The notes beneath the pieces are model-generated. The model made no database searches. It saw only the letters and a list, made by a program, of their open reading frames with translations, and was not told the DNA's origin. This document shows positions 5,875 to 42,899 of a stretch of DNA of 64,000 bases, piece after piece. The translations under genes were made by a program, and so were the position numbers. The DNA comes from Carpediemonas membranifera BICM (lineage: Eukaryota; Protista; Fornicata). How positions within the stretch are numbered: the stretch's first letter is position 1; every line of letters begins with the position of its first letter. The stretch spans positions 1,064,452 through 1,128,451 of the forward strand of contig JAHDYR010000038.1 of assembly GCA_019828565.1 (NCBI GenBank), written 5' to 3'.

Positions 5875-6615
5875 GCTAAATGCTGTGTTTTGGACAATTG
5901 GTCGTGTTCAGGCAGAATTTTTTCGTGCAAAGTGCAGGCTAATACCCGTCCTTAAACTGTGGGATCAGCCGCTGGGTAAATATACTGAGAAAAAACCATA
6001 TAGCTGAGTTCACTGTCTTGTGCTGAATACGGTGGCGCCATTTATTTCTCTGAATCGTCAAGTTTTGTCAGCGTTGACCGCGCAAGACCGGTCGTCCTTA
6101 CGCGATGTCACCAACACCATCATATTCTTCCCCCTGACATTCTACGTGTCCCCCAGTCTGGATTCGTGGTCTGCAATATTCACAGAGATATTCGCCTTCT
6201 CTTTCGCGAATTTGACTCTGATCAAGTCGAAAAACGAAAAAACGACCATATCTCGAAATCTACACGTTGGAATCGGTACCAGAGTGATTTTGCGCATATG
6301 TACATCCCGTCAGCAGTCTGCAAAATCACTCTCGTACCGATTCCAACGTGTCAATTTTGAGATATTGCTCGTTTCATCCTTTTGCCTTAACCTGCGTCGC
6401 AAAGAAGTCGAAATCAGTGGTTAGACCGCACTGGACCTCTTGCAGGCTCTCTGCATACGCGCTTTAGTATGCAATGAAGGTATTCATTTTCCCGTAAATT
6501 GTTTAAATTCAATGAATACTTCATTTTCGGTCCGGAAGAAATAGATAATCTAGGGTTTTTAGGCCCTAGATTATCTAGAAAAAATCGTAGATTATCTGCC
6601 GACTTTCACAGTATG

Positions 6616-9460: not shown

Positions 9461-9481
9461 ACCTCTGTTCATCAATTCCCG

Positions 9482-15100: not shown

Positions 15101-15564
15101 GGCAGCGAATGTCAGCCCGTCTCCATCATCAGCGGAAAGGGGAGAAGGCCCAGAGCGAGCGCTGGCGGACCTGGCGATGGGTGAGGAACTCAAACACAAG
15201 ATACAAAGGAGGTGCCCCCTGTGCACAAAGGAGAGCGAGATAGAGTTACTGTGGCAAATAGCGAGAGAGCAGCCAAACCAAGCCAGGAAGCAGGCACTAA
15301 TCAGGGAGTGGGTAAGGGGTCAGCCGCTGGGATCGGCGGCCCACATTATGTGTGAGTGCCCAGAGGTTGAAAGAGGAGATGACTGGGAAAAGATATGGAA
15401 GACAGCTAAGGAGAGGACCAGGGAATTGCAAGTCAGAAGAGGCCCGAATGGGAGGTGGTATGAGAAGAGGCCAATCTTAGAGGTGCAACAACTAGTGTTA
15501 ACAGGGTCGGAAGAGATATGGGAAGGACTGCGAGCTGGGCTGAGAGCCCTGGCAAAGGTCTATG
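12138..15564 (+). CDS. LINE A ORF2: APE endonuclease, RT and C-terminal CCHC (frameshift near 14290; last codons at 36487-36509)
   Basis: CIQETW, NVYGP, GDWN, PDFALV, SAH; YRPISL, DIEKAYD, GVKQG, FVDD; CPLC...HIMCECP. Confidence 0.93.
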
Positions 15565-17260
15565 CATACTGTCAACATCCCTAGATTATCTTTGCTAAAC
15601 CCTAGATTATCTTCGACCTCAAAAAGCTAGATAATCTACGGTTGCAAGAAAAAATGAACTCGACGATGAGCCGGAGCTGGATCTTCAAAGTGGTATGGTA
15701 GTACTTGGCTATACCTAAGCAATACGCATGCGCAGTATCAAACTTTAAATCCTGCTAGAAAAAAGTAACATAGGGACAAATTGGAATTGAGAGTTGAGAC
15801 TCAAAAAACGGGCAGGGGGGAGGAAATGGTCCATAAGTACGCCTTATGGGTCGCTTCCTCCCCTCTGCCCCTTTTTTATCGCAAAATCGATTTGCCGGAT
15901 TTGACACACGTTTGATGTGATCAAAATGGATTTGATAGACATGGGTCCAGATCATGCAGTTGGCCATCCTGAAGCGCTAGGGCGGTCTGCAGACCGCAGC
16001 AATGCCTCTGCTGAATGCCCTTCGCCTGACGGACAGGACGCGCGTTGACTCTAAAGGACTGCATGTTTCGGCATTAAAAGAAGGTGTGGAATACAACGGA
16101 GTCATCGCCGAACCGCTCCGACCAAGTCGGTTATTAGGACATCGCGTTCAGACGCCCTCTGCAATTACCAAGTCAATAGATGGGAGTCGACCTGATCAGC
16201 ACGTCATTTGGGGCCTCAGGTGACACTATAGCTGAGTTTGGCTGGGCGCTGCTGCGGCCATGGGCCGCTAGCGCGCTGATTGGCTCGTTTCTCCTCGTAT
16301 AGCTGCCGTAGAGGTCTGATCTGAGCCTCGTTCATACTGTAAGAATGGCTAGAGTCTCCCGGGAGATACTCTGGAGATACTCATGTGTCAACGCTGGTCA
16401 AACCTCGCGATCCAGGCGATCTCAGACACCTCCAGAACATCTAGAAGGTAGTTATAGAAGCATAAAAGACATGTCTGGCGTCTTGAAGTATCACATGGTG
16501 TCAGTGTTGATAAAAGAGGATAACGCATTTTATGTTGTAAATGTGAAGTGCTCGTTCGAACATGGGATCTTAACAGCGGTGTTTTATAGCTAATAGCAAT
16601 GCCCTCTGAAGTTTTCAGCCTCCAGTATCTTCTACTTCCGTATGAATTAATGATTGAATCAAGAGATTGAGAAAATGAAGACTTCCCCACAAAAACCAAA
16701 CATGGGGGGATAATCCATGGGGGTCAAGTACTATCCGTACATACTCAGGTTCTGTGGGGAAGTCTTCATTTTCTCGCATTCGAAAAATCTGCAAAATTTT
16801 ATCAACGATGAGATGGTCTTGGAAGATTGTGCTAACAACAGAGGTGTAACTAGATCAACAAAGGATCATGGAACCCTTGGTTTGTCCTAACGCCCGAAAC
16901 AGTGCCCAAAGAGCTCGTGACACAGGTGAACGCCAGAAAGAAATGAAGTTGCTCAGAGTGTACACCATATTGTCCTAGTTCCAATACTTTTTACCATTTT
17001 CTTCCAGCTGCTTTCGTTGGCGAGTTTCATTTTTTCTTACCGTTACTTCCGCAGTATCTTGCAAGATTCAGGGGGAAATTCAAATTCACTTTTCCTTTGA
17101 GGGCAAAGCAGAATTGCGCAATAACGCATCAATGGGTATGAGAAGCATAGAATACGTATAAAACTCAGTGTAGTTGCTGCTCACAACTTTTTGGAGGAAA
17201 CAGAGCAGCGGAAGCCCCAAACCAAAAATCTTTCACAAACTCTTGTGAAACTTGTGAAAT

Positions 17261-19832
17261 GTGAAAGTGACTTCAGCAAAAATTCCTGAGCATGCACATT
17301 GTCATACAGACCTTCATTGGCACTGTCTACGACAATACTGGCCCTCCAAGGACTGCAGAGCGTATGAACTACATTCTCGCTCATACATACCTCTCCCTTG
17401 TTGGTATTGGCGGAAATACACAGGATCGAGGGCCGCCAGCGCCGAGAATTCCGTGAAATCATCTTGGAAATGGCTAACCAGGGCCTATTTGCGGACATGG
17501 AGGTCGATCCGAGATTTTTCGCCGACCCGCACGACTCTCGACCCTTCTTGCGTGCAGTACGTTCCCATAGAGGAGTCGCCCCGACCTTCGATGTCTTCGT
17601 ACGTGACCACGCGCGTATTGCTGTCACCCACGAACGCTTGCGGAGACAGCACGAGGTCTCAACTGAGGAAACTGACAACTACAAGCAGATTTTTGGAGCT
17701 TGTTTCTATCCTGATGTACATCAAGTCGGGTTGTAACGCAACCCATGAGCTCTTTAAGCTCATCCGTAGTCTTTCTGCGCGACTTCATATGCCAATCATC
17801 TCCAGCAAGGCTGCTGATATCTTCGTGAAGCAGTTGCAGGTCAATATCACCAAGATCAACGGCCTGGTTGCAGCGCTGACTAGACCAGAGGTTGCTTTCT
17901 TGGGTCATCTCGTCCCTGTGGAGTCTGTCACAGTCAACACGACCTGGCGGTGGGGCAGAAATGGCACAAAGTCGAGACTCGAGTGCACCAATCGCCTAAC
18001 GGTGGACGAGGGTGTCGATATCCAGCCCCTGACGGACGCGGAGAACGTCATTGACTTCAAGTGGGAGAAGCCAATGCTTGATCTTCACTACGAGACGAGC
18101 GATGAGGCCACAAGTCATCGCCCTGAGCTCAAGCAGACCCAGGGAGTCACCCTCGGCAAGCGGCTCAACAGCTCCACATGGGACAAGGTTGATCGAGTCT
18201 GGTTTGATGCCGTTCGTTACCTCAAGCAAGCTGTTCGCCACCCGGAATGGCTCGAGTCGGACCAGCCCAACTACGTTCGATGCAAGAATGCCCTTGGCAA
18301 CAGGGTTGGAGTCACGTTTAGCCCCATGAAGATCCTACTATGGCTTGACGGGTGGAAAGGGGGTTCTGCTGCCTTCAAGCTCCGCATCTACGACCCCACA
18401 GGCTTCACATTCCCCAACAAGATTACTCCACCTTTCCGTATAGTCGAGTATATGGGTAGCGAGGGTGATTTGTTGATGGAAGAGTCTCTTTCTCGCGTCG
18501 AGAAGGAGATTGAGCGCCTATACACGAGTCAGATACCCATCAGAGACACTGGTGAGGTCACGATCTTCGACCATGTCATCGTCATGGGCGATCATGCCGC
18601 CCTCCGCCACATGCTGTCCAGAAAGTCGGGCCGGCCCAACTATCCACACCCTTGCAACACGATTTACCACAAAAGTAAGGCGCTCCACCCGATAGCAGGC
18701 CGCCATCGTCTCACCATCAAGGACAACCTGGACGATAAGACAGCATACCAGGCTGAAGTCGACGACCCGAACCGAGTTCAAGATGTACTTGCAATCTATG
18801 GCGATTTCACCAATGAACGCATGGTATTCGAGAATTGTAGTGTCATCCCTCTTGAGAAGATCGTCATATGCCCTCCATTCATGCACGACTCGCACCGTTT
18901 ACTCGAGCAGGTTGCCCATATCTGTGGTTCTTTCAAGAAGCATCCCACCACCCGCGGGTCCCGCGAGGAGATCATCCAGAATAAGCTCCTCAACCTCAAG
19001 CTTGGCCGTATGTCGTCCATGCGAAGCATCGATAGGACCGTAGGTTGTAACGAGCAGTCGTCCGCACGTGTAAGGATGGCTGCCACGACCCAAGAGGACT
19101 ACGTTGCTCTCCCTGAGTGCATTCAAGATATCATTCGGCTCATTGGCTACCTCCAGGCCATGTACTACTCGTCCGAACCTGTGACTGACGCGGCTGTCGC
19201 GTTTCACTTCATGGCTGCCGCAGTGGCCCACCTCATTCACGTCACGATTGCGTTCATTCCTAACAAGGATAAGACTTCCATATCCCTGCTATCAAGCAGC
19301 GAAGCGAAGACGAAGGAGAAACCGTGCGCTGAGAACCTCTACAGCATCAGCAGACTCACGACGCAGCCCCTGTGCCACAAGCATCTCAAGGTGCCGCTGT
19401 TCTATATCCTAGAGGAGTACTTTGAGCGAGAGTTCATCAAGAACCAGGAGGTAGCAGCCAAGTTGCACAGGAAGGCAGTCCTTGAGGGCATTTGCTTGAT
19501 CGAGCAGACAACTCTCGCGTGTTCCTTCCTGACGGGCATGCGTTCTTTTTGGTCGGCAGGACTACTCTGTCCCCCAGCTCCAGCGACTCAAGTGTGTGCG
19601 AGTTCACGACTGCTGTAAGGATGCGAAGCATTGGTTTGGTGTCCGCACACTGACCACCGTGACCTTCGAGCCAACTCGTGAGATGATCCAGACCTTTCAG
19701 GAGACTGTTGATGAAGTGTGGGAGTTTGTAGAAGAGCATACGACGCTGACGTGGGGTGAGGGAGGGCACGATGTCATGCAGTCTGGCGGACCATGGCATA
19801 GAGTTAGTTTGCTGCCTGTGTGGAGAGTGTAG
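17261..19832 (+). CDS. CMC/EnSpm-like transposase, frameshifted (N-terminus probably in the 17398-17736 frame, C-terminus in 19596-19832)
   Basis: LWLDGW, MGDHAAL...NYPHPC, PPFMH, EEYFER; homologous to 2852-5467 throughout. Confidence 0.75.
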
Positions 19833-20074
19833 CAGACAGAATTGAGGCATCCGCGTGATATAAAGTGATGTAAGATGGTTCCGTGATAAATTCATTCATT
19901 TTTCATATGTGCCACTTTTTTTCATGAATGGCACATTTCACATTTCGCAGGTTTCACAAAAGTTTGTGAAAATGAACCAAACGGGGAAAGAATCTTGGAC
20001 AGAGGATACTCTTGCAGCCCATAAGGCTTATATACAGTACGTAAGACTTTCTGATAAGTCAGACATCATCCCCA

Positions 20075-20828
20075 GTGTCCGTACGTTTTTTTAAGCAGGA
20101 CGTTGCCACGAGAGGAGTTGATGACATCGATCATCGCTTCTTCATGTTTGTTCACCCAGTGTTGCCCAGGTATTTACCCAGATTGGTTGCGATTCGTGAC
20201 TGCAAGACTGATTCCATCATTTCGGCCTTGTTGCTCACGAAGGAGTCATACAACACCGAAGCTACTGATGAAACCCCTTCCGAGCTGCGCCAGGACTTAT
20301 ATGTTGTGGTTATTCGCACGGCATTCTATGCCAGGGGCAATGGTCTCGCCACGATTCTTCTTTCGGTTGCCTCTGCCGGACAGAGGATCCGCCTGCAGTG
20401 TGTAAGTTCTCTTGTGCCAGCCTACCAGCGTATGGGGATGTCCATCTCCAAGCAAAAAGTCCACGATGGAGTACCTGGATGATGCGAAACTGGTGACCAT
20501 GGAGGCAACATACGGCCCGAACAAGTGGACGAAGCTCGGTGAGAGTCTCGTTGCTTGCCATGGATATGCCATGAAGTCCTGGAGGGCTCCCCCGTCCGTC
20601 GACTACGGTACGGCTTTTCACTTCTGTGGACCAGGTCCAGCCTCCCCAAAGAGAACCCAAGCCACCCAACCCACCCTGCCCACCAAGCCCTCGGACAAGC
20701 TCAACCGCTACATTAAGCGTCTGAGGAAGAGTGTTACCCCGCACCCGACGCGCAAGAAGCAACGTGAGATAATCATCGCCCTTTACGACAGCAACCGAAG
20801 GGATTTGGTCCAAAAAGATCGTGGATAA
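20075..20828 (+). CDS. GNAT-family acetyltransferase-like protein (split ORFs)
   Basis: Motif A ARGNGLATILL and LVPAYQRMG. Confidence 0.6.
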
Positions 20829-20951
20829 GAGATCAAAGATGCGTAAGGATTACCAGAAAGAGAACTATTTCGAGGAAGAGTGGTACCATCTGCTGTCTGA
20901 GAAGGAAGATGAGGAAGAGAATGAAGATTAAATGAAGAAGCAGTCGATTTA

Positions 20952-21639
20952 TTACTCATTTGAGTTGACGTTAGCTGCGTGGAAGAGCAGGAGGCTCGCG
21001 TAAACGGGTATACGCAGAACATCACGAGCCTCTGCAGCGGCACGGGCAGCGTTCCTCTTCTCAATCACAGCGGCGAGGTCCTTGAAGGTCTTCGAGTGCT
21101 TCTTGAGGACAAGCTGCGGACGCTCGAAGATGAGCTTAGAGTCCTTGCGGCACACACTCTCCAGAAGGACCTCTCTGACCTTGTCGACAGAGATACCAAG
21201 CCTCTGGGCGACGAAGGCGTAAGCGCGGGGGCGGACCGACTGAGGGATGCCGTGGAACAGCTCGCGGTACTCACGGACAGTTGCCAAGAGAGGGGCTGCC
21301 ATGGTCGACCTCATCTCCTTCGGCGTCCAGGCTGATGAGGGCCCTGAAGCGCTTCTCCTTGGCCTCAGAAGACTCGCCCTTGAACTGCGCCATGATCTTC
21401 TCGATGCTGTCGAGAGTACGGAACTCCGCTTCATCCCTAAGATCCTCCGGAACGAATGTGGGGAGGTCATTGGGGCGTCTGTCAACCACCTCATTGCAAA
21501 TGCGGTTTCCGGTGGCGACATCGGCAGCGGAGATGCTTCCAGCAGCGTGCTCCTTCTCTAAGTAAGTAGAAATCATCTCCACAGCGTTTAGACGCTTTCT
21601 GCCCTTGCTCTTAGCAGAATTACTCCGTTTCGGAGGCAT
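20952..21639 (-). CDS. Hypothetical protein (split ORFs 21271-21639 and 20952-21521)
   Basis: Overlapping ORFs with an N-terminal PPKR NLS-like start; no domain recognised. Confidence 0.45.
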
Positions 21640-22338
21640 AACGTTTCTTCAAGGTGCACTTTATGCTCGCAACGAAATTAGAAAACCAAACGAAGAAAGG
21701 AGAAGAGTATCGATCCTCAAACGCTGGCAAGCATGTGTATATCACTAAAAACAACATCATGAGAGCTCTGTGGCCTCGAATGGCCTGTAATAGAACCTAA
21801 ACAACATCAACAATTGTAACTCGTCGAGGAAGCGTTGAGATGAACTATAAACGCGGGAATGGATCAAACAATGGATTTAAGAGTGGCATACAAGGCCAGA
21901 ATACCGCAATTATCGTCCGTTGATCCACGTGACCTCCATCTTGGTCGGTATCCAGAGAAAGCCCTTCAGACGCTCGCAACACAACATTTAGAAGACTTAT
22001 CGTGAATGGCTCCTTCCATGATGGACCTTCACCTGGACATGCCATCTCTGACATGTCCAATGGTCTCCATTGAGCTCGCATTCATCCCTCTGAGCATCCG
22101 CCCCATGGTCCAATCAGATGCCCAATCAAAATTCTGCACCGAAGTGCCCCGAGGACCTCCTCTGAGTTCATAAGGCTCTCAGAGCCTTATACACCAATTC
22201 GAAATCGTGTATAAGGCTCTCAGAGCCTAATGAATCTCCCGCGCCGTTGCCTACTGATACTGGTCATTTTTCCGCATGGTTTATTAGGCTCTCAGAGCCT
22301 TATGAATTTTTTCATTAGGTCCTGAGAGCCTTATAATC

Positions 22339-23712
22339 ATGCAATCGGTTTTCGACTTCTACATGCTCTTGAAGCGTTCGAAAACGTTTGGTAAGCAGTT
22401 CTTTATCTTCTATGACAGCGCTGAGATCAGTCAGGCCTCATCAAACGCGCAGGAGATGATCAAGTGCTCACTTCTTCGTAAGTTCCTTCTGCCCGATGAC
22501 AAGATCCTCACCGCCCTTCTTCGTGATCGTAAGTACTTTCCCCATACCTTTTTACACAGATATTGGCTGGAAAACGCTTCGCAAGCTCTTCAGGTCGCCT
22601 CACCTTATCCTGCACCTAAGAGAAACTGCCGAGGCTCAGCTTGAGCTGATCACGACATCGGCTGAGCTGAAGAAGGTCATGGGAGATCATGCCTACGACA
22701 GCCTTGTCCAGAAGGTCCGCCGAGAAGTGTCTTCGGATCACGAGCACGACGTTGGAGGTAAGTACTCCAAATAACTCCTGCTTATTCAGTCCTTTCGCTG
22801 CTCCGTGAGCGCATAATGCGCAAGGTGAAGCCAGGAAGGTCGGGGGTCGTCCGTTCGTTCAAGAACAACGCCGAGCCTGAGCTGTCGGACCCGGTCGACG
22901 TGCAGTTCGACCGGATAAGGCACCTGGACGCGCTTCTGATGGACTCTCCCGTCCACAGAAGTACCCTGAGTGGCACATCGCGCCTCCTGCGCCACCATCT
23001 TGCCGTGGAACACAACGGTGCGATCCGTGATTTGAAGAGGGAGCTTTGGCGAGCCCGGGCCAAGATTGAAAAGCTCGAGACGGAGAAGCTTGTGCCCTTG
23101 AAGAAGGAGGCTGAGGTCATAGACCTGGATCGGGAGGCTTTGGTGGCCGCAGACCCCAAAGATGACGTCCAGACCATCATGGAGAAGACCGCTAAGAAGT
23201 TTAAGAACGATACAAGCTCTCTGAAGCGGTCTGAGGTGCCTGGGGATGGCTCATGCATTCTCAGCGCCATGCATCTCATCAGGACTGGGTCCCAGCCTAC
23301 TGTTGGTGAGAAGCTTCAGCTGTACGAGGACATCCGATCCTTCTGTGAGGGCAAGGGGTTCGAGGGCGACCCGTTCTCTGAGATGCCTGGCTCCCCTTTC
23401 CCCTGGGCAGACCATGAGGCCATCCAGGCCAGTGTAGAGCTGAGTCACACTCCGGTAATCATCACCCAGATCGACGAGGACCTTACCTGCCTCTGGGTCC
23501 ACAAAGGTTGGGAAGATTCAGAGTTCTTGCCCATCCAGGATGCGACGCTGGACAAGATCTTAGGTCTTTGTGAGAGCATGAAGCTCACTCAGTTCATCGT
23601 CATCGAGAATCGTCATGCCTGTGTCTACAGTCTTCCGGACCGCAAGCGCAAGGCAGCTGCCGCAGAGCCCGAGAAGCGTGCTACTCGTCCGGAGGATGTC
23701 ACCCGCTCATAA
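22339..23712 (+). CDS. OTU-like cysteine protease with N-terminal extension; 32-nt intron at 22758-22789
   Basis: VPGDGSCILSA...W...IENRH OTU motifs. Removing GTAAGT...TTCAG joins ORF 22496 in frame to ORF 22816. Confidence 0.7.
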
Positions 23713-23785
23713 ATGATTGATTGAATTGATATCTCTTCAAGTTTATTCACTCTTGCCTTGAGTCATGCGCGCAGTGTGGAAGCGC

Positions 23786-24797
23786 TTACGGGCGGGGTTG
23801 GACTTGGTCTTCCGCTTGCGGGGCTGCGGCTTGACCTGCAGTATTTTTGAACTGCTCCACCTTTCGAGCGAGGTAGTGAGGGTCATCTATGGCGAGACTC
23901 TTGAAGCGAGCAACCGGGTGCTCCTCTTCATCGGCCTCAAAGTAGGTCTCGCCATAATCGATGCGCAAGAACTCGCCGCGAACGATGTTGGCAGTGGCCC
24001 TGACCGATATCACTGGCAGGCCATCCACCAAGACGTCCACGAACTCACAGTTGACATCGTCAGGGCTGTGGTTAATCAGGTGGACACCCGCTGCGGCCGA
24101 CATGGCATCGACGGCGACCTGACTGTCAGCGAATGACATGCTGTGTAATGGTAATGGAATATGCGAAACAAACACCATCTGGCCGTTGTTGCTGGCCGTC
24201 TCAGCATCGGGAATCAGCTTCCCGAGGTATATGCCGAGACATGTGCCAGCTGAGATATCCTCAGTGGCAATCATGCCTCGGCCGACGCTCTGCGTCCGGT
24301 TGAGGGCCGGATGGTCGGGCTCCTGGGTCAGACGGGGGTCGCAACGGGTCTCGGATGAGATCCAGGCCGGAGCAGGAATGGCCTGAAGGCTTATCTCATC
24401 CGAAATCAGCCGCTTGACGTCCTGCAGGTCTGAACCCGGGTAGAACATGCGTCCACCTAGGGTGGACGTGCATGACGGACCCCTCGACGGAGTCCTCCTC
24501 GGCTTCAGACGAGCTGGATGAATGGGAAGGCGACTCGGGAGGCGGAGGAGGAGGAGAATCTTGCTCCTTACCATCCTCGGGCGACTCGGGAGGCGGAGGA
24601 GGAGGTGATGCTGCCGTTACAGTCGTTTCCGCAGGACGTTGATCCTGCGGAGAAGCAGATGACACAAAAGTGTCGTTGAGTGGATTTTGAATCCTTCTCT
24701 TACCTACCGGTTGCTGCTTCCTTGCGGACATCTTTCTTCTCGCCATATCTTCGTTCTCTTTTTTTCTCGCAACTCCCGATCCGAAGAACAGGCGCAT
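23786..24797 (-). CDS. SET-domain lysine methyltransferase
   Basis: GRGMIATEDISAG...YLG, LINHS, IVRGEFLRIDYG; Pro-rich N-terminus in the adjacent frame. Confidence 0.88.
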
Positions 24798-24848
24798 CGC
24801 TGATCAGATCCGAACAATACTGCAGTAGCATGCATAAATAGTGTAGCA

Positions 24849-25946
24849 ATGAAGGTATACCTCTTTACTTGGATCAAAAGCTTGTCCTTTGCTTCAAATC
24901 AAAATGTGCCATTCATGAAAAAAAAATTGGCACATTGCAAATGGACGAGAAATACGGAGAATTCGGCACGCGACGCATCAGTAAGGACCAAGAAGTCTTT
25001 GAATGTGTCTGTGGTAAGGTTCAGCTCAGGCGTGGACATCGCGGGATCGGTTTCAAGTCTTCTTCCTCTCACGAGTGTCCTTTTTACAACAGAGAAGTTG
25101 ATTAACCGACGGGTGCTAATCACCATCGAGCCGCTGCATGGTTTCGAGACCCCGACTCAGCCCTACCCCGTCTTCCGCGTGGAAAGTCTTGCCAACTCAT
25201 CTGGCTATCACTTCAAGCTCAAGACGGCTCTAGAGCTCGTTGATGATGAGTGGCTGACTGCCGTTGCCCGCACCTTTAAGTCTACGTCCCATCTGGCCGA
25301 GGTACTTGAGGAGTTGGCGTCGCAGTACTCTAACTTCGACACTTACTGGGTGATATCGGGTCATTCTGATACAGAAACGTCGCGTATGATCATTGATACG
25401 TCTACGAACGAGTTTCTGTATCACCATGATCTGGTCCAGCTCATCCTCAGGTCATTCGAGAGCCCTTCCTTGGTGAGATCGACGCGTGTGCGTCTGATTT
25501 ACTTTGCCACCTGCTCCGGACTCGACAGATCTGAGGAGTCTCAGCTGTGCAGTGCTATTTCGACAGCCAAGTACAAGAACACATGCATTATCCTCACTCC
25601 TGAGAAGGTTCTGGCGCATGAGCTTGTTCTCCAGGACGCCTATTGGCTCTACCGCGTGACATGCCTCGACAATCCTCTTTTCTTTCTGACGAAGTACTTC
25701 TCTGGCTATCGTTTCGCGCCTGGCTCAGCAGGAAGACGGATTATAGCCAATGGTTCCTTGTCATTTCCCAACGAGGCCAGGGTCATCATGTCTGAGACTA
25801 GCTATGCCCGGCCCATTCCTCTTCCTGAAATGCAAGACATCGTTTCTGATGTCAACGAGTATGACCCGTTAAGAACCGACCAGAGAAGACTTATGAATGA
25901 TCGATACATAAGCATGATGACCCGTGCGCTTGAGAGAGACGTGTAG
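24849..25946 (+). CDS. Possible caspase/CHAT-fold cysteine peptidase
   Basis: Hydrophobic strand + SGH (WVISGHS) and hydrophobic strand + C (LIYFATC), the clan CD dyad pattern. Confidence 0.5.
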   Translation: MKVYLFTWIKSLSFASNQNVPFMKKKLAHCKWTRNTENSARDASVRTKKSLNVSVVRFSSGVDIAGSVSSLLPLTSVLFTTEKLINRRVLITIEPLHGFETPTQPYPVFRVESLANSSGYHFKLKTALELVDDEWLTAVARTFKSTSHLAEVLEELASQYSNFDTYWVISGHSDTETSRMIIDTSTNEFLYHHDLVQLILRSFESPSLVRSTRVRLIYFATCSGLDRSEESQLCSAISTAKYKNTCIILTPEKVLAHELVLQDAYWLYRVTCLDNPLFFLTKYFSGYRFAPGSAGRRIIANGSLSFPNEARVIMSETSYARPIPLPEMQDIVSDVNEYDPLRTDQRRLMNDRYISMMTRALERDV

Positions 25947-25989
25947 TAAACAGATATATATACAATTTATGATCATCTCTCACTAAACA

Positions 25990-27214
25990 CTAAACAATCG
26001 GTCTCATGCCCTCTACTCGCTTATAGACAACCTTACATTTGCTGCAGAGGGGAACGATGTACAACTTGCCATCAATGGTGTACTGCACTTCCTCAGAGCA
26101 ATGCTCACAGTACCACCAGTGACAGCCTCGGCAGCAAAGAAGAGTAGAAGCCTGTTCTTCTGCTTTCTTCGTGTTCTTGGATCTTAGGCCCTTTTTGCAC
26201 GCCTGGCACTTGTTGCTAGAGCCGGTAATATAGCACGCGGGACAGTAGTCCTTCTTGCCCTTCGTCCTGACACATTGCTCGTGCAGGAAACCTTTGCAAG
26301 CACAGCATCTCCTGAACGTAGTGCCGTCTGGATTGAAGAACCACTCGGGGGTACCACACACAAGACATCCAAATAGCATTTTGCGCTGATGAAGGCTAAG
26401 GAAAGTCGTCTTACATGTCTCGGGTTCGGTAGGCGGGTCTCTCACACGGGTCTCTGAGACAACGTCATTGATCAGGACCTTAATACGGTCAACAACAGCA
26501 TCGGACACGTTGTTAGACACCTGCTGCAGATCGTCGTCACCAAGCCTGGGTCGCTTGGCTTCCTCGTCGTCAAAGACGATCTTCTTCCGAACCGGCACCG
26601 ATCGATCTGTCGTTGACTGAGGTGTGTCTGCTTCATCACCAACACCAAGTGAAGACAGTTGCGTAGTCGACCGTATCGGTGGGATCTCTGCCTTGATCAT
26701 CGTAGTCGGGGTCGATTTGACCGTTGCCTTTTTGCTTGACAGGCTTATATCTCACCCGGTTGATCACAGGCAAGTTCTCAAGGCTGATTGAGTCGGAAAC
26801 ATCGTTCAGTCCAGCATCTGAGAGAACATCTGAGAGCATCTGGCGGAACTCGGCATGGCAGGGCTGACTACGGACAGCAATGTGCTGCATGACAGAGCCA
26901 TTGTACTCCGCAGAGGGTCTAACTGCTGTTATAAACGTAGTAACGCCGACAACAGTCGTCCGCCTGACCTGTTCCCGGAGTTCAATTGACTTGAACCCAG
27001 GGCATTCGGCGGCGACCCTGCGCTGGACCTCCAGAAGTACCTTATGGATGTCGCGTGCACTCAAGCCGAGGTCAGTTGCCTCGTCGTCCTCAAATACTGA
27101 AGAAACAACGGCTGTAACAAATGAACGACGGAGATTTGCGAGCTTACTGTTGCCATACTGTCTGATGGGGGGCGTAGCAGCAATAGGTTCTGGTACAGAC
27201 ACTTCTGAATTCAT
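25990..27214 (-). CDS. PHD-like multi-zinc-finger protein (split ORFs)
   Basis: CLVC...CCAC-x4-H-x2-C...CPAC followed by a second Cys cluster; homolog of 1473-2754. Confidence 0.7.
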
Positions 27215-27985
27215 GAGAATTTCTATCCAAGCTGTTTACGTTGTTACATTTGTCTATTTACGTAGACTCCTGGCATTGACAATACCTAAAACTGCGACAT
27301 TTGTCGGTCATGATTCGAGCAACTAGCCACCAAAAGGTAGAAACGGTAACGTCAGGGCTCGTGGAAGTTGCCAAAGTACAAGATTCTTACCAAATAATCC
27401 GAAAAACTGCTCAGGGCTTGCGAAAGGAAGAAGAAATCAACAAAAAGGTGAATGACACAGAGTTTCTGCTGCAAGAGATACGCGATTTGTTTATAGATGC
27501 CATACAGACGATGAGGGACAAGTAAAAATGACATTCACTAGCTTTGCTTCTCATTTCACATATTCTTGTGAAATATGTGAAATGTGAAACAGATTCTAGT
27601 GAATCTCATTTTTTCTTGCACTTTTTGGAGTATCTCCAGGGTATCTCCCGGGAGACTCTAGCCATTCTTACAGTATGTTATAATAGTCTGCCCGAGTAGA
27701 GTCCAGCCATACCATAAATGTCCCCCAATCTCCCCCTCCCGGTCGCTCATACCTCCAAAATGGCCTATATTCCCTGTAGGGAGATTAATAAGGGCGGATT
27801 TCCCATAAGTCGTGGCATAGAGGGAAGAGACTTTGTACACAGCCTCCTGATCGTGGGTTCAATTTTCACCGGGAGCAATATGCTCTTTTTGGCAGACAAC
27901 GCCGCTCCGAGCTCTATCGCGCCCAGCGGTGCCTGCAGCGGCCAGAACAGAGCTAGAATTCGGGTGATTTTTAATCTCGATCGAA

Positions 27986-28629
27986 ATGCTGCTGAAGCAC
28001 GCTCTAGAGGGACTGAAGCGCTCTACGAAGGAGCAATACAAGCAGACATATCAAAAACTGTGCGTTTACCTTGAGTGCGACGATGAGGATGCTGATGTTG
28101 TTATTATCACAGAGATCCGACAAAATAGTGACGTATTCGAACAGTTTCTGGACTCTCTGTCCTTCTGTTGCCGTTTTGGACGGTACAAGTCCATCTCGAT
28201 GCCTCAACAGGCTCTCGTTCGCCTTCTTCGCACTGCTGGTGCCGAAACCGACCTAATTTGCAGGATAAGGACTCACACGCTTCCGGCACGCCAGGTGCTG
28301 ACTGAGGAAGAGTACGACAAGCTCACGGGTGCTCTGAAGTACGACATTGCCGAGTCCCACCGTCAGCTCGCCCTAGTCGTTGCTCTCTGCCGGCTGGGAT
28401 CGTATGTCGCAGACCTACGTGACTTAGACCCGCGCTACAGGAGTTGATGCAAGAGGCTGCCGTGGATCACCCTGCCTTTGAGACCCTTATCTGGATGTCC
28501 AAGGACCTTGATTCGCTCTGGGGTAGTCCCCCCATGACAGTCAGGCACGCGAAACGCATCTTGCACGAAGCGGGGACTTCAGTGACTGAAGCGAGGACGA
28601 ATAAATCCTTTCAGTCTGAAGTGAGTTAA
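27986..28629 (+). CDS. Degenerate tyrosine-recombinase-like protein
   Basis: STKEQY N-terminal helix, VLTEEEYDKL and a box-I-like LGSYVADLRDL that lacks the catalytic Arg; HxxR and Tyr not evident. Confidence 0.35.
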
Positions 28630-28707
28630 GCGTGTAATACGCCATAAAAGCTTCCGCCGGTGAGGTATCGAGCTCTGTGGTCAGCATAGAGAAGTGTTGC
28701 ATTATTC

Positions 28708-31700
28708 TGCGAAATAGTGGCCAATTGGCCACTATTTCGCACCCTTATGCTCGCAACGAGACTGAAATGAGGTTCCAGGCGAAAAGCGAAGCAACGATGA
28801 GTAAAGTAAGTAAGTGGTGCTGGTGTCGTGGCTGTGGGGCGTGTGGCACTTGCGCCCCGAAAACGCCATATTACCGGGGTTCGTCGACATCTCTGCTCCC
28901 AAATCTGCACCTGAATTTTCGGGAGCATGGCGGGGAGCTGGGCCAGACAAGTGGTGCCACAGGGACTAAGCTCCGCAGCTCAGCCTCTGCCAGGCGGCAC
29001 TCGTTTGAATTCTGCACGAAAATATTCAGACGACGAAAGATGGGCAAAGGGCCCCGAAAACGCTGTAGTACCAGCGCAAGTGAAGCATTTTGTAATAGAA
29101 TAGCTTACTTGCGCTGATGCTGGCGTTTTCGGGGCCCCAAATCGCCTCCGTGCGCTCTCCTGCTGCTCTCCCTCCCGTGCGCCATACCCCGGCGCTCTCC
29201 TGCCGCTCTCCCTCCCGTGCGCCATACCCCGGCGCTCTCATGCTGCTCTCCCTCCCATGCGCCATACCCCGGCGCTCTCATGCTGCTCTCCCTCCCGTGC
29301 GCCATCGCCCGGCGCTCTCCTGCCGCTCTCCCTCCCGTGCGCCATACCCCGGCGCTCTCCTGCCGCTCTCCCTCCCGTGCCATACCCCGGCGCTCTCCTG
29401 CCGCTCTCCCTCCCGTGCGCCATACCCCTGGCGTCTCATGCTGCTCCCTCCCATGCCCATACCCCTGGCGCTTTCATGCTGCTTCCCTCCCGTGCGCCAT
29501 CGCCCGGCGCTCTCCTGCCGCTCTCCCTCCCGTGCGCCATCCCCCGGCGCTCTCCCTCCCGTGCGCCATCGCCCGGCGCTCTCATGCTGCTCTCCCTCCC
29601 GTGCGCCATCGCCCGGCGCTCTCCTGCCGCTCTCCACCGCCGTTATCCTCCCGGCGCTTGTTTCTTGGCCGCTCGCTCTCTATATTGAAGTTAAATGGTG
29701 TTTATTACTCCTATTGATGGTAATAAGGCCTCATCAGTGCTTCGCACGGCTAACAACTAACGCCACAGCTGAAACTGATGATTCACTACGTTAAACGAGA
29801 AAGTGAGTGAACCGTTTGTTGATATTGTTAAAAAGTCTTGATCTGCGCACCAAACGCTCCTGTTACTGTCTTAATTGCCGATATCGTAGTGGCCAATTGG
29901 CCACTATTTCGCACTTTATGCTCGCAACGAGACTGAAATGAGGTTCCAGGCGAAAAGCGAAGCAACGATGAGTAAAGTAAGTAAGTGGTGCTGGTGTCGT
30001 GGCTGTGGGGCGTGTGGCACTTGCGCCCCGAAAACGCCATATTACCGGGGTTCGTCGACATCTCTGCTCCCAAATCTGCACCTGAATTTTCGGGAGCATG
30101 GCGGGGAGCTGGGCCAGACAAGTGGTGCCACAGGGACTAAGCTCCGCAGCTCAGCCTCTGCCAGGCGGCACTCGTTTGAATTCTGCACGAAAATATTCAG
30201 ACGACGAAAGATGGGCAAGGGCCCCGAAAACGCTGTAGTACCAGCGCAAGTGAAGCATTTTGTAATAGAATAGCTTACTTGCGCTGATGCTGGCGTTTTC
30301 GGGGCCCCAAATCGCCTCCGTGCGCTCTCCTGCTGCTCTCCCTCCCGTGCGCCATCCCCCGGCGCTCTCCTGCCGCTCTCCCTCCCGTGCGCCATCGCCC
30401 GGCGCTCTCCTGCCGCTCTCCCTCCCGTGCGCCATCGCCCGGCGCTCTCATGCTGCTCTCCCTCCCGTGCGCCATCGCCCGGCGCTCTCCTGCCGCTCTC
30501 CACCGCCGTTATCCTCCCGGCGCTTGTTTCTTGGCCGCTCGCTCTCTATATTGAAGTTAAATGGTGTTTATTACTCCTATTGATGGTAATAAGGCCTCAT
30601 CAGTGCTTCGCACGGCTAACAACTAACGCCACAGCTGAAACTGATGATTCACTACGTTAAACGAGAAAGTGAGTGAACCGTTTGTTGATATTGTTAAAAA
30701 GTCTTGATCTGCGCACCAAACGCTCCTGTTACTGTCTTAATTGCCGATATCGTAGTGGCCAATTGGCCACTATTTCGCACTTTATGCTCGCAACGAGACT
30801 GAAATGAGGTTCCAGGCGAAAAGCGAAGCAACGATGAGTAAAGTAAGTAAGTGGTGCTGGTGTCGTGGCTGTGGGGCGTGTGGCACTTGCGCCCCGAAAA
30901 CGCCATATTACCGGGGTTCGTCGACATCTCTGCTCCCAAATCTGCACCTGAATTTTCGGGAGCATGGCGGGGAGCTGGGCCAGACAAGTGGTGCCACAGG
31001 GACTAAGCTCCGCAGCTCAGCCTCTGCCAGGCGGCACTCGTTTGAATTCTGCACGAAAATATTCAGACGACGAAAGATGGGCAAGGGCCCCGAAAACGCT
31101 GTAGTACCAGCGCAAGTGAAGCATTTTGTAATAGAATAGCTTACTTGCGCTGATGCTGGCGTTTTCGGGGCCCCAAATCGCCTCCGTGCGCTCTCCTGCT
31201 GCTCTCCCTCCCGTGCGCCATACCCCGGCGCTCTCCTGCTGCTCTCCTCCCGTGCGCCATACCCCGGCGCTCTCATGCTGCTCTCCCTCCCATGCGCCAT
31301 ACCCCGGCGCTCTCATGCTGCTCTCCCTCCCGTGCGCCATCCCCCGGCGCTCTCCCTCCCGTGCGCCATCCCCCGGCGCTCTCCCTCCCGTGCGCCATCG
31401 CCCGGCGCTCTCCTGCTGCTCTCCCTCCCGTGCGCCATCGCCCGGCGCTCTCCTGCCGCTCTCCCTCCCGTGCGCCATCGCCCGGCGCTCTCCTGCCGCT
31501 CTCCCTCCCGTGCGCCATACCCCGGCGCTCTCCTGCCGCTCTCCACCGCCGTTATCCTCCCGGCGCTTGTTTCTTGGCCGCTCGCTCTCTATATTGAAGT
31601 TAAATGGTGTTTATTACTCCTATTGATGGTAATAAGGCCTCATCAGTGCTTCGCACGGCTAACAACTAACGCCACAGCTGAAACTGATGATTCACTACGT

Positions 31701-31852
31701 TAAACGAGAAAGTGAGTGAACCGTTTGTTGATATTGTTAAAAAGTCTTGATCTGCGCACCAAACGCTCCTGTTACTGTCTTAATTGCCGATATCGTAGTG
31801 GCCAATTGGCCACTATTTCGCACTTTATGCTCGCAACGAGACTGAAATGAGG
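28708..31852. repeat. Tandem macro-repeat of three units (1171, 866 and 1043 bp) plus a partial unit, each with a 40-bp minisatellite array
   Basis: Unit marker TAGTGGCCAATTGGCCACTA at 28716, 29887, 30753 and 31796. Minisatellite GCCATCGCCCGGCGCTCTCCTGCCGCTCTCCCTCCCGTGC arrays at ~29147-29637, 30317-30503 and 31183-31545. Confidence 0.95.
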
Positions 31853-32547
31853 AACTTAAGAATAGAAAGAATACTGGCGGCTTTAACGTAGTAGGCATGT
31901 GCACAACACTAAGAAACATCAGTAAGCGGGCGCAGAGCATCATTAAAGCAACAATAATCCCTAAACAACATCAATCATCATAAGTCCATCAGGACCATAC
32001 GATATGAACTATAAATGGAGCATAGATCAGTACAGCTGATTTGAAAGTACCAGGCATGGCCAGAATACCGCAATACTCGCCCGTTGATCCACGTGACCTC
32101 CATCTTGGTCGGTATCCAGAGAACGCCCGTCAGACGCTTGCAACGGAACATTTAGGGGGTGCATCCTGAATGGGGCCAGATTTGAGGGACCCTTGGTCTG
32201 ACATGCCATGACCGAGTACTCTAGGGGCCTCCACAGTGCGTCCCGAGGTACGTTAGAGCACCACAGACCTTCCCCCAAAAGCTGACTCCTGGACACCTTG
32301 GCCGGAGCTCGCCCGAAGCGTGCCTCGGCTTGAACTAACGGCAAGAGAGCATAAAATCAGCCCTTTCGAACCGTGTTTTATGCTCTGCTGCCGTTATAGA
32401 ATTATTCAAAGGGCCCTCTCTTTGCGCTTTTTTCTGGTTCGTGGGACGAAGTAGGGACGGACAAAAAAGCAGATACGGAAGGTATTGGAGGTACTGAGGC
32501 CGCCTAGGTACATAGTTGCCGTGTGGATGGTTTCAGTTTATTACTTT

Positions 32548-34626
32548 TGGCACTCTATGTCCATTTTTTTATGCTCTCTTGCTGATAGTGCCGAACATGG
32601 ACTTGCTAAAGTGGATTGAGAGCGCTAGCAAGGAACAGTACGATGCGATATTGGCTGCATACACCAAGGCAAGGCCTCACGAAGGACGAGAAGGAGGAGC
32701 TCCAGGATAAGTTGAAGAAGCAGTTTATGGCACTCGCCGGACCAAGAAGTTCCAAGAAGCTTGGCGCGCTGGCGAAGTGGGTTGACGACAACCAGGCTGA
32801 TATCGTGTATAGCCAGGAGAAGCGCAAGGCGCGTAAGGCCATTATTGAGGCCATTGACGCCGAGGAGAAGGACAAGGGCAAGGGCAAGGCCGAGAGCGCT
32901 AAGAAAGAACCCGTCGACGATGAGAGTGGCGTGGACAGTGGTGAAGAGAGCGGCGTCGACGATTCTGAGTTGTGCGACAGTGAGAGTGAGGTGGACTTTG
33001 ACAACGAGTCCGACGATGAGATTAGAGAACGCGCGATCAAGCGCCGGCGCGAGAGAAAGATCGCCCAGAAGCTCAAGGAGTGGGAGGACAATAACGCTCG
33101 CAACTACGTCCTGTGGCATAGAGTCCAGAAGGAGGTGCACGGCGAGCTTCGCATTCGCGCCTCTCGAGAGTCAGCTGCGGTTGCTGGGGACAACCACGTC
33201 GACGTCCAGTTCGACAGATACCTTCGCGTATCCAAGCTGCTCGAAATGAAGGACTGGATTCACAAAGACCTCCCATCTCTTCCGATGGAGGCACGAGTGC
33301 TCCATCACAAGGCGCAGAAGAGAGTACTCGAGCTGGAGGAGACCGTCACGAGGCTGCTGCAAGACGTGGGATACGCAGCTGACATCTCCATGGGTGCCAG
33401 CCCGACACCCGCGCCGTTTCGCCGCGACCTACCCCAGTCGGGCACACACCAAGCACGAACGAGTACCCCCGCCGTACGGGGAAGAGCGACACAATCCACA
33501 TGAAGCGCAAGGCCCTCATGACAATCCCTCAGAAGATCGCTGATGTCGATAACAACTCAGAGGAGTCAGACGAGGAGGAGATGGTGACAGAGGAGAAGAA
33601 GCGCGAGGCACACGAGGAGCTGGTGACAGAGGAGAGGAAGGGTGAGTCACATGAGGAGGACGTGACCAAATGCGACGCCTGCATCCAGACTGAGCCGGAG
33701 AAGGCCAGGCCAGAGGACTCGGAGGAGGAGTCAGAGGAGGAAGAGGAGCCAGTGGAGGAGGGTGAGGCAGAGGAGGAGGGCAGGAGGACGAGATGGCTGA
33801 GTCAGAGGTGAATGCAGAGTCAGAGGAGAAGCGTGAGGCAGATAAGGAGCAAGATGCAGACAACGAGGTGGCATTCGAGGCTGAGTCGGACGTTGAATAT
33901 GTCCAGGTCGACCACGTCGACCCAGCTTCCGAGCAGATGAGGAGCAGGGAAGTCAAGTTTAGAGTTGACGTCGCCAATCAGCTGGAGAAGAGCAAGCAGT
34001 GGGTCAGATACAAAACCCTGTCCCACGGCAACTGTATAACACACTGCCTCATGATGATCGAGGGCGTCACGGAGCCTCATGCGTTCAAGAGCTGGGAGAC
34101 GATGACGAATGAAGAGCAGTGTGCAGCGGAGACGAAGGCGGACAACTACCGCGAGCAGATATACAAGGAAGCGATAGAGATGAACCGGCGGGCCACTCCG
34201 GGGTACAGGCGGCCCGAGGAGGGTCTCCGGGACGAACTTTTCCATGAAGTGTGCAGTGTACACACTGTCACGGAGGAGGGCAACATCGGTAAGCCAATCA
34301 TGCAGGAGAAGTGGTTGACTCAGTGGGCTGTTGAAGCCTGGTGCTCAATGACTGGAAAGTCCGTTGCATACCTCCATGTTGTCCGGGATTCTGACCCAAA
34401 GATCGATCCAGTCGTCGGCATGTACGTTTTTAGCAAGTCTGAGGAGGGCAAAGTGACACATGTCGCGTTTAAGCCCAACGAAAACGGCCAGAGCGCCCTG
34501 GCGTGTTTTGCCCAACAGTGTCGCGAGTGGGAAATCGAGTATGCGGTCGAAGTGACAAGGGGACACGCCACTCTGCGCAAGGTTCCTCCCGGGCTGAAGA
34601 GGAGGAGATGGTCAGTGAAGAAGTAA
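32548..34626 (+). CDS. OTU-like protease with acidic N-terminal regions (split ORFs 32616-33503, 33500-33811, 33793-34626; start approximate)
   Basis: VDVQFDR motif shared with the ORF at 22816; HGNCITHC...W...RGH OTU-like residues. Confidence 0.55.
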
Positions 34627-35182
34627 GAGTAAAGGATTGATATACCGACCGTATCGCTTATGTTTATGTGACCTTGAGGTTGATTCGCGGTTTGTAGGTG
34701 GGTATGGTGCTATATTACTCAGCCTGCTGTATATGTCTAGTCTACAGCCTGTATGCAGCTGTCTGTGGTGGTAAATATCGTCGGCTGGCCGAGAAAGCAT
34801 AAACTGCACACTTGTGCATTCGAGTACAGTGACGAAATCCCTCAATATGTTACCAGCAGTGCATTTAATAACCAATATCAACGCCGAGACGCGTGTAGTT
34901 CGGAGCCATGTAGTTGTTTGCGCTCGTCTGTCCCCCCTATTACCGAAACTGGTGCTGTACTCTAGAAAATCACTAACAACATCAACTCCTTTTCTCCGCA
35001 ATGCAGATGAGAATGCCTATTCTCGCGATCTATAACTACCAATCATGTTTTCATTCTTTACTCATACTTGCCACAGATGCACACATCCAGTGAGATCTCT
35101 CCTTCCTCATTGCCCGTCAAACACGAGCCCTACCTCAACACCTTCTTCCATAGACCATCCACTTGACCTTCAAACAGAGGTC

Positions 35183-35336
35183 GACTGAGTGCCAAAAGCT
35201 GCACATGGTGTTTAGTCAACGGCCTATGGCGCACTGTCTTGTCGAAAGCAGACCGTAGCTTTGACTCAGACTGGCTGGATGTTCCCATTCACGAGCAGGG
35301 ACACACTCATGATATTTGCATATGTAAGAGATAGTA
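35183..35336 (+). pseudogene. C-terminal remnant of the transposase
   Basis: Nearly identical to 5308-5467. Confidence 0.85.
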
Positions 35337-37282
35337 AAGATCGGATTTAGTCTCGCGGTATCTCACGTGGCCCAGAGCAGCGTGCTCCTGGAATCAACAG
35401 GGCACAAAACAGCCTGCGTATTCCGGTAGCACACCGTTCTGACTCATACGTCCGTCTCTGGTTGTCGTATACAGGTCTATTTACGTGTTTGGTGATGGCG
35501 CTCCCTTAAATCTGCTTGAACAGCGTGTCGTGGCTGTCAGTATGCTGCATATGTCTCAGCGAGAAAGGAGTCACCAATCGCGTTCAGCTTTCTTGTTTCT
35601 CGCCTGATAAGGCTCGTAATATCGTTCAAGCGTGAATCTATGAAGTAATGGGACTGAATGGCCTCTATTGCGTCAATTTCCTGCGTAATCGTTGTGGAAT
35701 GGCCTAGAATAGATGTTGCAGCTGCTTCCAGCTCCTGTTGCATGCTAAATGCTGTGTTTTGGACAATTGGTCGTGTTCAGGCAGATTTTTTTCGTGCAAA
35801 GTGCAGGCTAATACCCGTCCTTAAACTGTGGGATCAGCCGCTGGGTAAATATACTGAGAAAAAACCATATAGCTGAGTTCACTGTCTTGTGCTGAATACG
35901 GTGGCGCCATTTATTTCTCTGAATCGCTAAGTTTTGTCAGCGTTGACCGCGCAAGACCGGTCGTCCTTACGCGATGTCACCCAGCCCATCTTGTAGGTCG
36001 GGTGGCCATACCTCGCGGCCTTGCTTGCTTTTCTTTGACGAGCAATATTCCCTGAGTAATAGCCTCTCCTTTTCTTCAATTCGACTCTAGCCAAGTCAAA
36101 AAACAAGAAATCGACCATATCTCAAAATCTAACAGGTAGATTCACTCTGAAAGTGATTATGCGCATATGTACCTCCTTTCAACTACTCACATAATCACTA
36201 TCGTAGTGAATCTACCTGTTAGATTTTCTGTTATTGTCCATTTTATCGTTTCGTCTTAACCTGCACGGCGAAATGCTCAAACCAGGCAATGAGTCAGAGC
36301 CAGAGCTTCTTTCCATGCTCTACGTACATCATATGGACTCTAAAGAAGACCTTCGTTTATCTCTAAATAGCTTAAATTTAATGAATACTTCATTTCTGAG
36401 CAAGAAATTGTAGATTATCTAGCGTTTTGAGGTCGAAGATAATCTAGGGTTTAGCAAAGATAATCTAGGGATGTTGACAGTATGTGATAGCTATAGAATA
36501 GATGGATAGATAAGGAACACCACATCCAGAAAGGGGGCAGGGAAGCATAGACTCTGGGATCAAGGGGAGACCCCCCATGTTTCCCAGGGAGAGGGCAGGG
36601 CCAGGGACAGAGGAAATCCATCAATTGGATGGTTGCACCACTCGCGGTGAACCTAAGGAAACTGCAGGGACTGAGCATGGGATACGGGGGGACATGACGT
36701 CCCCGCCGCCCTTGTGAACGATAGAGGGACGCTGGGAAGTGTAGCACAAGAGAACTATCATAAGGGGTACTAGGCCTTGCAGATCTAGAGTCTGTGTTAG
36801 CCCTAACCCACGCCGCCTAACAGGGGTAGATGAGAGGGACTTAGTTGCTTTCCCCGCCCACGGGTAGGCCACTTAACAGGGTCGTGGGGGCACTGAACAG
36901 GGAATCTGGAAAGAGGAGAGGGTGCCATGCTTGAACGACCCCGTAGGGACTGCAGGGAATCAGGGAGTGCTATAGAGAAGGTCTTGCAGGACAAACCTGC
37001 CTGTGGAAGCACCGAGGACAGACCCCCAGGCTCCCTGGAAGCTGCCGGGTTTACAGGGAGACAGGAAAGCGCTCAGCGCACGGAGATGGCGAAGGCCTAT
37101 GGGGGGAAGTGAAATCGGGAGTGAGCGGAAGCAGTAGCACCGAATCGCTCGTTGGACGCAGCTGACAAGTTCAATCGCAGGGAGGAGGCAGCGCCCCGGG
37201 GAACTCGGCTCCAGTAATAAGGGAGATCAGCCTAAGTAACCGGGGCCCGATACCAGGCACCATAAATTTTCTTTCTTTCTTT

Positions 37283-38664: not shown

Positions 38665-39146
38665 ATCACGACGGGAGTCGTGGGGCAGTGACGATTAGCA
38701 CGGTACCGACATTCTTGGACGCGAACCCACGAGGGGTTGGTCGGGGGCCCACTTGCGTGCCTGTGGGCCAACCATTGTTAGCACGTTGCCGGCGGGATAT
38801 CCCCGTTGGTTAATGAAAAGAATGTCATGAGGCTAGGATAGCTAGCTGGCGCTACATCGTCAGTAAGGTTACCTCGGGTAACGGGCCCGGAGCGGAGGGC
38901 GATGCGATAGCCTCACTCCGGGCAAAAGGTGTTTCGCCGGTCAGGCGAGTCACGCAGTTTATGCGGACAGAATGGCGCAAGGTTCGGATCCGCCGGATCC
39001 GACGGCACGGTACCAGTTACGACTGGTATACTCCTTCTCCCTCGGTAAGCGGAGAGGACTTCACGTTTAACTTACACTAGCTTCCTCGTTAACATTGTGT
39101 AAATTAAGCGCCCCCCGTTGGTTAATGAAAAGAATGTCATGAGGCT

Positions 39147-42778: not shown

Positions 42779-42826
42779 AGGATAGCTAGCAGCCTAGTCT
42801 AGCGGACGATATCAGCCCGGAAAATT

Positions 42827-42899
42827 TGGTCCCTGCCAGACTCGAACTGGCATCGCAGGATTCAGAGTCCTGAGTGCTAACCACTTACACTAAGGGACC
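42827..42899 (-). tRNA. tRNA-Gln(CTG)
   Basis: GGTCCCT acceptor, D arm, CAGGA-CT-CTG-AA-TCCTG anticodon arm, GCCAG-TTCGAGT-CTGGC T arm and a downstream TTTT terminator. Confidence 0.93.

Follow-up and report, generated by a model that had tools for sequence, protein, structure and literature searches.

Large multi-gene DNA transposons nested in the genome of Carpediemonas membranifera, with a transposase predicted to fold like RAG1

The DNA analysed here is a stretch of 64,000 nucleotides (the window) from contig JAHDYR010000038.1 of the fornicate protist Carpediemonas membranifera BICM (assembly GCA_019828565.1, positions 1,064,452 to 1,128,451, forward strand). It holds all or part of three large DNA transposons, named by family: the outer element (family A), inserted in a long interspersed nuclear element (LINE), the inner element nested within it (family B) and an element ending at position 6615 (family C). 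These are real, recently amplified cut-and-paste transposons of 9–25 kb in Carpediemonas. With a probability of about 0.8, they are considered to be large DDE transposons that form a multi-gene lineage of their own, akin to the CMC group and equipped with a RAG1-like transposase.

Nested elements, ends and genome copies

The elements, their terminal inverted repeats (TIRs), the copies of the target-site duplication (TSD) and the target open reading frame (ORF) are arranged as follows:

12138..15564, plus strand: target LINE ORF2 (endonuclease–reverse transcriptase), whose final codons resume at 36487
15565..36484: outer element, a non-autonomous family A derivative of 9,573 bp split by a family B element of 11,345 bp
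15565..15639, plus strand: left TIR of the outer element (family A), 75 nt, starting CATACTGT, with three AGATAATC-type repeats
36410..36484, minus strand: right TIR of the outer element (family A)
16333..16382, plus strand: left TIR of the inner element (family B), 50 nt, with a TSD copy TT just before it
27628..27677, minus strand: right TIR of the inner element (family B), with a TSD copy TT just after it
35064..35331: two back-to-back 3' transposase-gene remnants (35064–35180, minus strand, family A type; 35215–35331, plus strand, family C type)
6540..6615, minus strand: right end of the family C element, whose left end lies outside the window

No inverted repeats in the window are longer than the outer TIR pair (75 nt, 99%) and the inner TIR pair (50 nt, 98%). 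The outer element is flanked by TG on both sides (15563–15564 and 36485–36486), and its excision in silico returns the last seven codons to the LINE, in register with the window's second LINE, as expected from the initial annotation, which had reported a restored frame. Genome counts refer to the C. membranifera assembly of 24,237,836 bases in 69 contigs, where the LINE target is found empty, with a single TG, at 25 sites and the target of the inner element, with a single TT, at 48. TG and TT are true 2-bp TSDs, as these empty sites prove. The earlier description of an 11.3-kb inner element with a 50-nt TIR and a TT duplication is confirmed, its transposase gene being frameshifted in the window copy. 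The outer element had been described as 20.9 kb long; its 75-nt TIR and TG duplication hold, but the size is a nesting sum, and without the insert 9,573 bp remain, with no transposase gene of their own.

Genome-wide, the 22-nt termini of families A, B and C occur 61, 54 and 37 times, whereas the reversed controls of all three have 0 occurrences. Together with the empty sites, these counts place the ends and copies beyond chance, and they agree with the proposed right end of the third element at 6615. TSDs were read in four insertions and are 2 bp long in all of them: besides TG and TT, AT was found (from coordinates) at a family A copy within a family B copy on contig C6, and GC at an element from another organism (locus L061, described below). 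A fixed target dinucleotide was ruled out by the differences among the four TSDs and by the variable flanks of ten family C right ends. At family C right ends (n = 10) and fourth-family ends (n = 2), divergence from the flanks begins exactly at the terminal C.

All families terminate in CATACTG or CATGCTG, the latter taking the place of CATACTG at one quarter of family A ends. The footprints comprise precise ends in CATACTG(T) or CATGCTGT, repeated subterminal motifs that are specific to each family and 2-bp TSDs of variable sequence, along with numerous near-identical dispersed copies, nesting and non-autonomous derivatives. Sizes were taken from paired ends, and the spans include nested inserts. 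Family B is narrow in size (median 11,342 bp, 19 end pairs), family A measures 8.7–9.4 kb without and 19–20 kb with a transposase gene, and family C mostly spans 19–30 kb, with additional miniatures of 112–753 bp.

It is extremely improbable that assembly errors in a long-read genome rich in repeats produced the nesting and the TSDs. Scattered 1-bp indels in transposase copies do suggest polishing errors, and one fold-back is present at contig C13; against this explanation stand the dozens of empty sites, the unrelated flanks of many copies, and an independent assembly in which both the ends and the TSD length recur. In the fold-back (C13, ~68039–68781; L035:2452–3742), a 743-bp family C miniature is centred in an inverted duplication of its own flank, with no TSD; the structure is a fold-back artefact of long-read sequencing or else a rearrangement that arose from a hairpin.

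The three families share the terminus, as first noted, but the claim that their TIR bodies differ has to be qualified for families A and C. Both contain the repeated AGATAATC motif, and the two are 92–99% identical over 35182–35930, falling to 64–73% closer to the end, which points to recombination between these families. The back-to-back remnants at 35064..35331 are the deletion junction of the outer element. Near-copies of this transposase-less derivative are present on other contigs, and therefore the outer element was mobilised in trans.

Transposase sequence, predicted fold and relatives

Two transposase genes lie in the window:

2945..5467, plus strand: intact family C transposase, 840 aa, with W344-x-D346, D425, PPxMH524, RTTGCNE, EExFE705R and C-terminal HxCC and CxC
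17279..19846, plus strand: family B transposase gene, ~850 aa, frameshifted near 17430, 19548 and 19760

The family C gene is open, and the genome contains several open copies 99–100% identical to it. The family B gene in the window has three 1-bp insertions relative to most sister copies, and these frameshifts rule out the 785-aa inner ORF as the true transposase protein. Polishing errors are a plausible cause, since the sister copies bear other single-base indels and one window base near a frameshift is missing from a probable RNA contig. TTTCACA/TGTGAAA repeats flank this gene in inverted orientation (17231–17282 and 19918–19971) and recur at 27554–27589, near the right end, and at 24902–24924, upstream of the caspase/CHAT-like gene; they are candidate promoter or regulator sites.

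Transposases of the host families are 25–60% identical in pairs and nonetheless share the same terminus. Residues W344, D346, D425, H524, E701 and E705 are invariant in 25 sequences. E705 is taken to be the catalytic glutamate by analogy with the ExxE of RAG1 and the FER of CACTA, and D346, D425 and E705 would form the catalytic triad. The C-terminal HxCC..CxC motif is also conserved; in RAG1-like (RAGL) proteins a zinc-binding tail clamps DNA, and the motif may bind zinc in a parallel manner.

The model of the transposase core (predicted local distance difference test, pLDDT, 87.2; predicted template modelling score, pTM, 0.88) matches RAG1 with a Foldseek E of 4e-8 and a VIA Z of 15.7 over 389 aligned residues, in line with the RNase H-like DDE fold anticipated initially. 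BbRAGL follows with a Z of 14.9, the RAG1 alignments spanning 380–389 residues, and HzTransib reaches 10.8, the next unrelated chain being at 7.3. The full-length model agrees with these matches. Atlas features place RAG1 first (0.94), and the Atlas shape ranking lists unnamed fungal and cnidarian clusters, RAG1, EnSpm and Plavaka. The transposase is predicted to fold like RAG1, with RAG1/RAGL as its nearest structural kin and the P transposase nearly tied.

P elements end in CAT, and the P superfamily has TSDs of 7–8 bp and an N-terminal THAP domain. A P-element-like origin could explain the CAT ends, the absence of a C(2)C zinc site and the helical insertion, which also exists in P transposases, and the Drosophila P transposase aligns with a Z of 14.6 and the lowest root-mean-square deviation (4.6 Å). 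However, this alignment covers 293 residues, P does not appear among the 50 best Foldseek matches, the TSDs are 2 bp long, no THAP match was found by Pfam and homologues with C(2)C exist, so that such an origin is highly improbable.

A profile search of 1.84 billion proteins (representatives) gave 37 matches, the strong ones coming from the host, assembly GCA_002919055.1 and a sediment metagenome; among the viral contigs searched, no relative was found. A complete 11.6-kb element from another organism lies in locus L061; it ends in CATACTG, has a TIR of 74 nt and is flanked by GC on either side. It splits a gypsy-type pol gene, whose frame is open across the junction only with a duplication of 2 (or 5) bases. 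In two further loci of other assemblies, CATACAGT (L062:12805) and CATGCTGT (L066:7065) lie downstream of transposase genes and are probable element ends, with no partner ends on those contigs. Internal hairpins (long imperfect inverted repeats) occur at conserved positions near ends and between genes of the window elements (16669–16775, 22167–22336, 36108–36243 and 6248–6365), and similar hairpins are seen in L061, L063 and L066.

The C(2)C and H(3–4)H motifs are reported to be common to all CMCT lineages and RAG1 (PMC12730594). A distant metagenomic clade, homologous to this transposase lineage (HHalign, probability 99.9%), shows RCxxC and YWHxxxH where members of the lineage show YPxPF and TLxx. 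This clearly homologous clade has both motifs at the same positions. Loss of the core zinc site is the simplest reading. In a tree of family members and metagenomic kin only, built with no outside reference transposases, a 100/100 branch separates the 18 close rows from the distant set, with long branches. Some of the unnamed metagenomic relatives (P0023, P0029, P0031, P0033–P0035 and P0037) have C(2)C and H(3)H, and some have C-terminal CXC-like domains. These proteins may represent further undescribed lineages, their contigs being too short to show ends.

Accessory genes

Besides the transposase gene, the inner element carries the following genes, and further ORFs belong to families A and C:

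19972..20482, plus strand: GNAT acetyltransferase-like gene with a probable short intron, homologous to Pfam-GNAT ORFs in related elements (E 1e-4 to 1e-5)
20952..21640, minus strand: ORF with no assigned function, covered by probable RNA contigs
22400..23712, plus strand: OTU-like cysteine protease gene, DGxC..H motif by inspection, 5' start approximate
23786..24574, minus strand: SET-domain gene (Pfam PF00856, E 2e-11)
24849..25946, plus strand: caspase/CHAT-like protein, GH and C dyad kept in four elements, start approximate
25990..26700, minus strand: PHD-like Cys/His zinc-finger protein
26636..27214, minus strand: ORF with no assigned function, at the right end of family B
27968..28447, plus strand: family A ORF fragment with no Pfam match, ending in a degenerate tyrosine-recombinase-like segment that lacks the catalytic Arg (by eye)
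28708..31852: tandem array of three ~1.04-kb units that contain a 40-bp minisatellite and the palindrome-like motif TAGTGGCCAATTGGCCACTA; unit number differs among family A copies
32610..34626, plus strand: family A ORFs for a charged/acidic protein and a second OTU-like protease (33793–34626, HGNC..H)
1473..2345, minus strand: family C PHD-like zinc-finger ORF

SET is the only firm Pfam match among the accessory genes of the window. Contigs from probable RNA runs cover two accessory genes and reveal, for the OTU-like gene, splicing of a 32-nt GT..AG intron (22758–22789). The caspase/CHAT-like protein has DUF6642 as its nearest Atlas cluster (0.92), and its gene is present in many host copies of several subfamilies.

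The extra genes had first been regarded as cargo. In related elements elsewhere, the accessory families known from family B recur (OTU-like, SET, caspase/CHAT-like, PHD-like and GNAT-like), with identities of 23–43% across assemblies. Captured host cargo was set aside because of this recurrence, and the five types of gene are most likely a conserved repertoire inherited with the element. They could act by altering chromatin or ubiquitin marks and so keep the element expressed and mobile, a role that we slightly favour. Precedents exist for transposon-borne SET and OTU genes (PMC12730594, PMC6431247). SET-carrying HarbingerS and MuDR of oomycetes, VANDAL and OTU-carrying Helentrons resemble the new elements in bearing chromatin or ubiquitin modifiers, but they have other transposases, and the five-gene combination is not in any of those cited there (PMC12730594, PMC6431247).

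Placement among known transposons and proposed mechanism

The CMCT clade (Kojima 2025) has 5'-CA..TG-3' termini and TSDs of 2–5 bp as a rule (PMC12730594). The new lineage shares these termini, this TSD range and, in the predicted model, a RAG1/Transib-like DDE fold, but neither the C(2)C nor the H(3–4)H motif is present. It is classed as CMCT-like rather than as a CMCT member, because the comparisons with EnSpm, Transib/RAGL, Plavaka, ESTA and P were negative, as were those for the two motifs. The distinguishing trait is the missing zinc motifs, not the terminus. CAT ends had been considered to fall outside the CMC norm, a view that does not stand: PlavakaB has CAT ends with 2–3 bp TSDs (PMC12730594), and EnSpm families of 16–20 kb with several ORFs are already known (PMC6431247). 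Given also the CA..TG rule, neither the ends nor the size are new.

RAG1/RAGL (ProtoRAG) and Transib provide the best whole-core structural match (Z 15.7, 14.9 and 10.8). They also resemble the new lineage in DDE spacing with a large insertion, a conserved terminal heptamer beginning with CA and a Cys/His-rich C-terminal tail. CATACTG and the heptamer CACAGTG of recombination signal sequences have 5/7 positions in common. In contrast, the new lineage has 2-bp rather than 5-bp TSDs, CAT rather than CAC ends, no C(2)C or H(3–4)H zinc ligands, 5–8 accessory genes and ~10% identity, and no RAG2-like kelch gene was seen in its elements. The similarity is structural and language-model only, with no RAG1 Pfam domain and no sequence homology to RAG1/Transib chains.

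EnSpm/CACTA, on which the initial annotation had relied, shares short TSDs (2–3 bp), repeated subterminal motifs, the DxxA/MH/FER layout and large multi-ORF elements, the Chondrus families (16–20 kb, 4–5 ORFs) being the counterpart in size. These hallmarks were found, but there is no Tnp2 (Pfam Transposase_21) match at E<=1, the ends are CAT instead of CAC..GTG, the zinc motifs are absent and the structural score is lower (template modelling score, TM, 0.51–0.56). The proposal of a distinct, CMC-related multi-gene lineage of large eukaryotic transposons is supported, with the nearest fold shifted from EnSpm/CACTA to RAG1/RAGL (P, Transib). PlavakaB, which is fungal, shares CAT..ATG ends and 2–3 bp TSDs, but its ends are CATCA (CATCA..TGATG) as against CATAC/CATGC here, it keeps the zinc motifs, TM is 0.41, and the Plavaka transposase (PF18759) gave no Pfam match. 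The TA-specific duplication of ESTA differs from the TG, TT, AT and GC observed.

The elements could instead belong, as a divergent member with zinc ligands lost locally, to a lineage that already has a name and lies on the Transib/Chapaev side of CMCT, Lanisha and Transib being the most plausible. Besides the agreement of CATACTG with the RAG heptamer at 5/7 positions, this is favoured by the nearest Atlas structures, unnamed Mucoromycota and Cnidaria clusters (TM 0.59–0.68) from taxa with listed Lanisha families, and by the lability of TSD length and TIR sequence within Transib (bioRxiv 10.64898/2026.08.26.747230). However, among the profile-search matches at E<=0.001 there was no annotated transposase from animals or fungi, C(2)C and H(3–4)H are reported to be retained in both Lanisha and Transib (PMC12730594), and Transib scores below RAG1 and P in structure. 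Membership in a named lineage is unlikely; Lanisha, a CMCT lineage near this side and set apart here by its reported motifs, is the main risk to novelty.

Several observations weigh against a distinct lineage with a RAG1-like transposase. Pfam, PDB-sequence and word-index searches all failed to name the transposase, which has no sequence match to any Pfam family or PDB chain. All structures, including the transposase core, are predictions, and P comes within ~1 Z unit of RAG1. In 16/16 members, C(2)C after the second D is absent (YPxPF-type sequence, at most one Cys) and no His pair precedes the catalytic E, a single His being present in some. For accessory functions other than SET, the evidence consists of conserved catalytic motifs, BLAST between elements and a single Atlas lead. 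Finally, no transposase transcript was found among the probable RNA contigs, a result that does not show silence.

Under the distinct, CMC-related lineage, an RNase H-like transposase of 840–860 aa with a RAG1-type helical insertion would bind the subterminal repeats and cleave at the conserved terminal heptamer by means of D346/D425/E705. Nicking followed by flank-side hairpin cleavage, as in RAG/Transib, is moderately favoured by analogy. The two ends would then be joined 2 bp apart in target DNA of no fixed sequence. The core zinc site would have been lost, with the C-terminal HxCC..CxC possibly binding zinc instead. At this locus, the outer element would have moved in trans into the LINE and then taken the family B insertion. 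A new group of superfamily rank, defined by an active RAG1-fold transposase with no core zinc site, CATRCTG ends, 2-bp TSDs and a five-gene chromatin/ubiquitin toolkit in anaerobic-sediment protists, is put forward tentatively and is less probable than the reverse.

With these elements, the RAG1/Transib/CMC lineage reaches into a metamonad, in which copies are young and intact. A natural zinc-site-free RAG1 fold with a 2-bp integration stagger offers a direct test of the roles of the ZnC2/ZnH2 site and of target bending, and the conserved accessory kit points to an anti-silencing strategy. The host is known for its reduced DNA-processing machinery, and the text of its genome paper mentions no transposons of this kind (PMC8516963). 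Element genes are invisible to Pfam and stand as hypothetical proteins in the host proteome, where they therefore inflate SET, PHD, OTU and GNAT gene counts.

Other mobile elements share the window. Several DIRS-like retrotransposons (reverse transcriptase, RNase H, tyrosine recombinase) occupy 7150–11000 and 37166–48000, with 7932–8773 and 41944–42785 99% identical, and Gypsy-like long terminal repeat (LTR) retrotransposon fragments lie at 43493–45766 and 54702–59436. Identical 66-nt repeats are found at 54610–54675 and 59462–59527, unusually short if they are LTRs.

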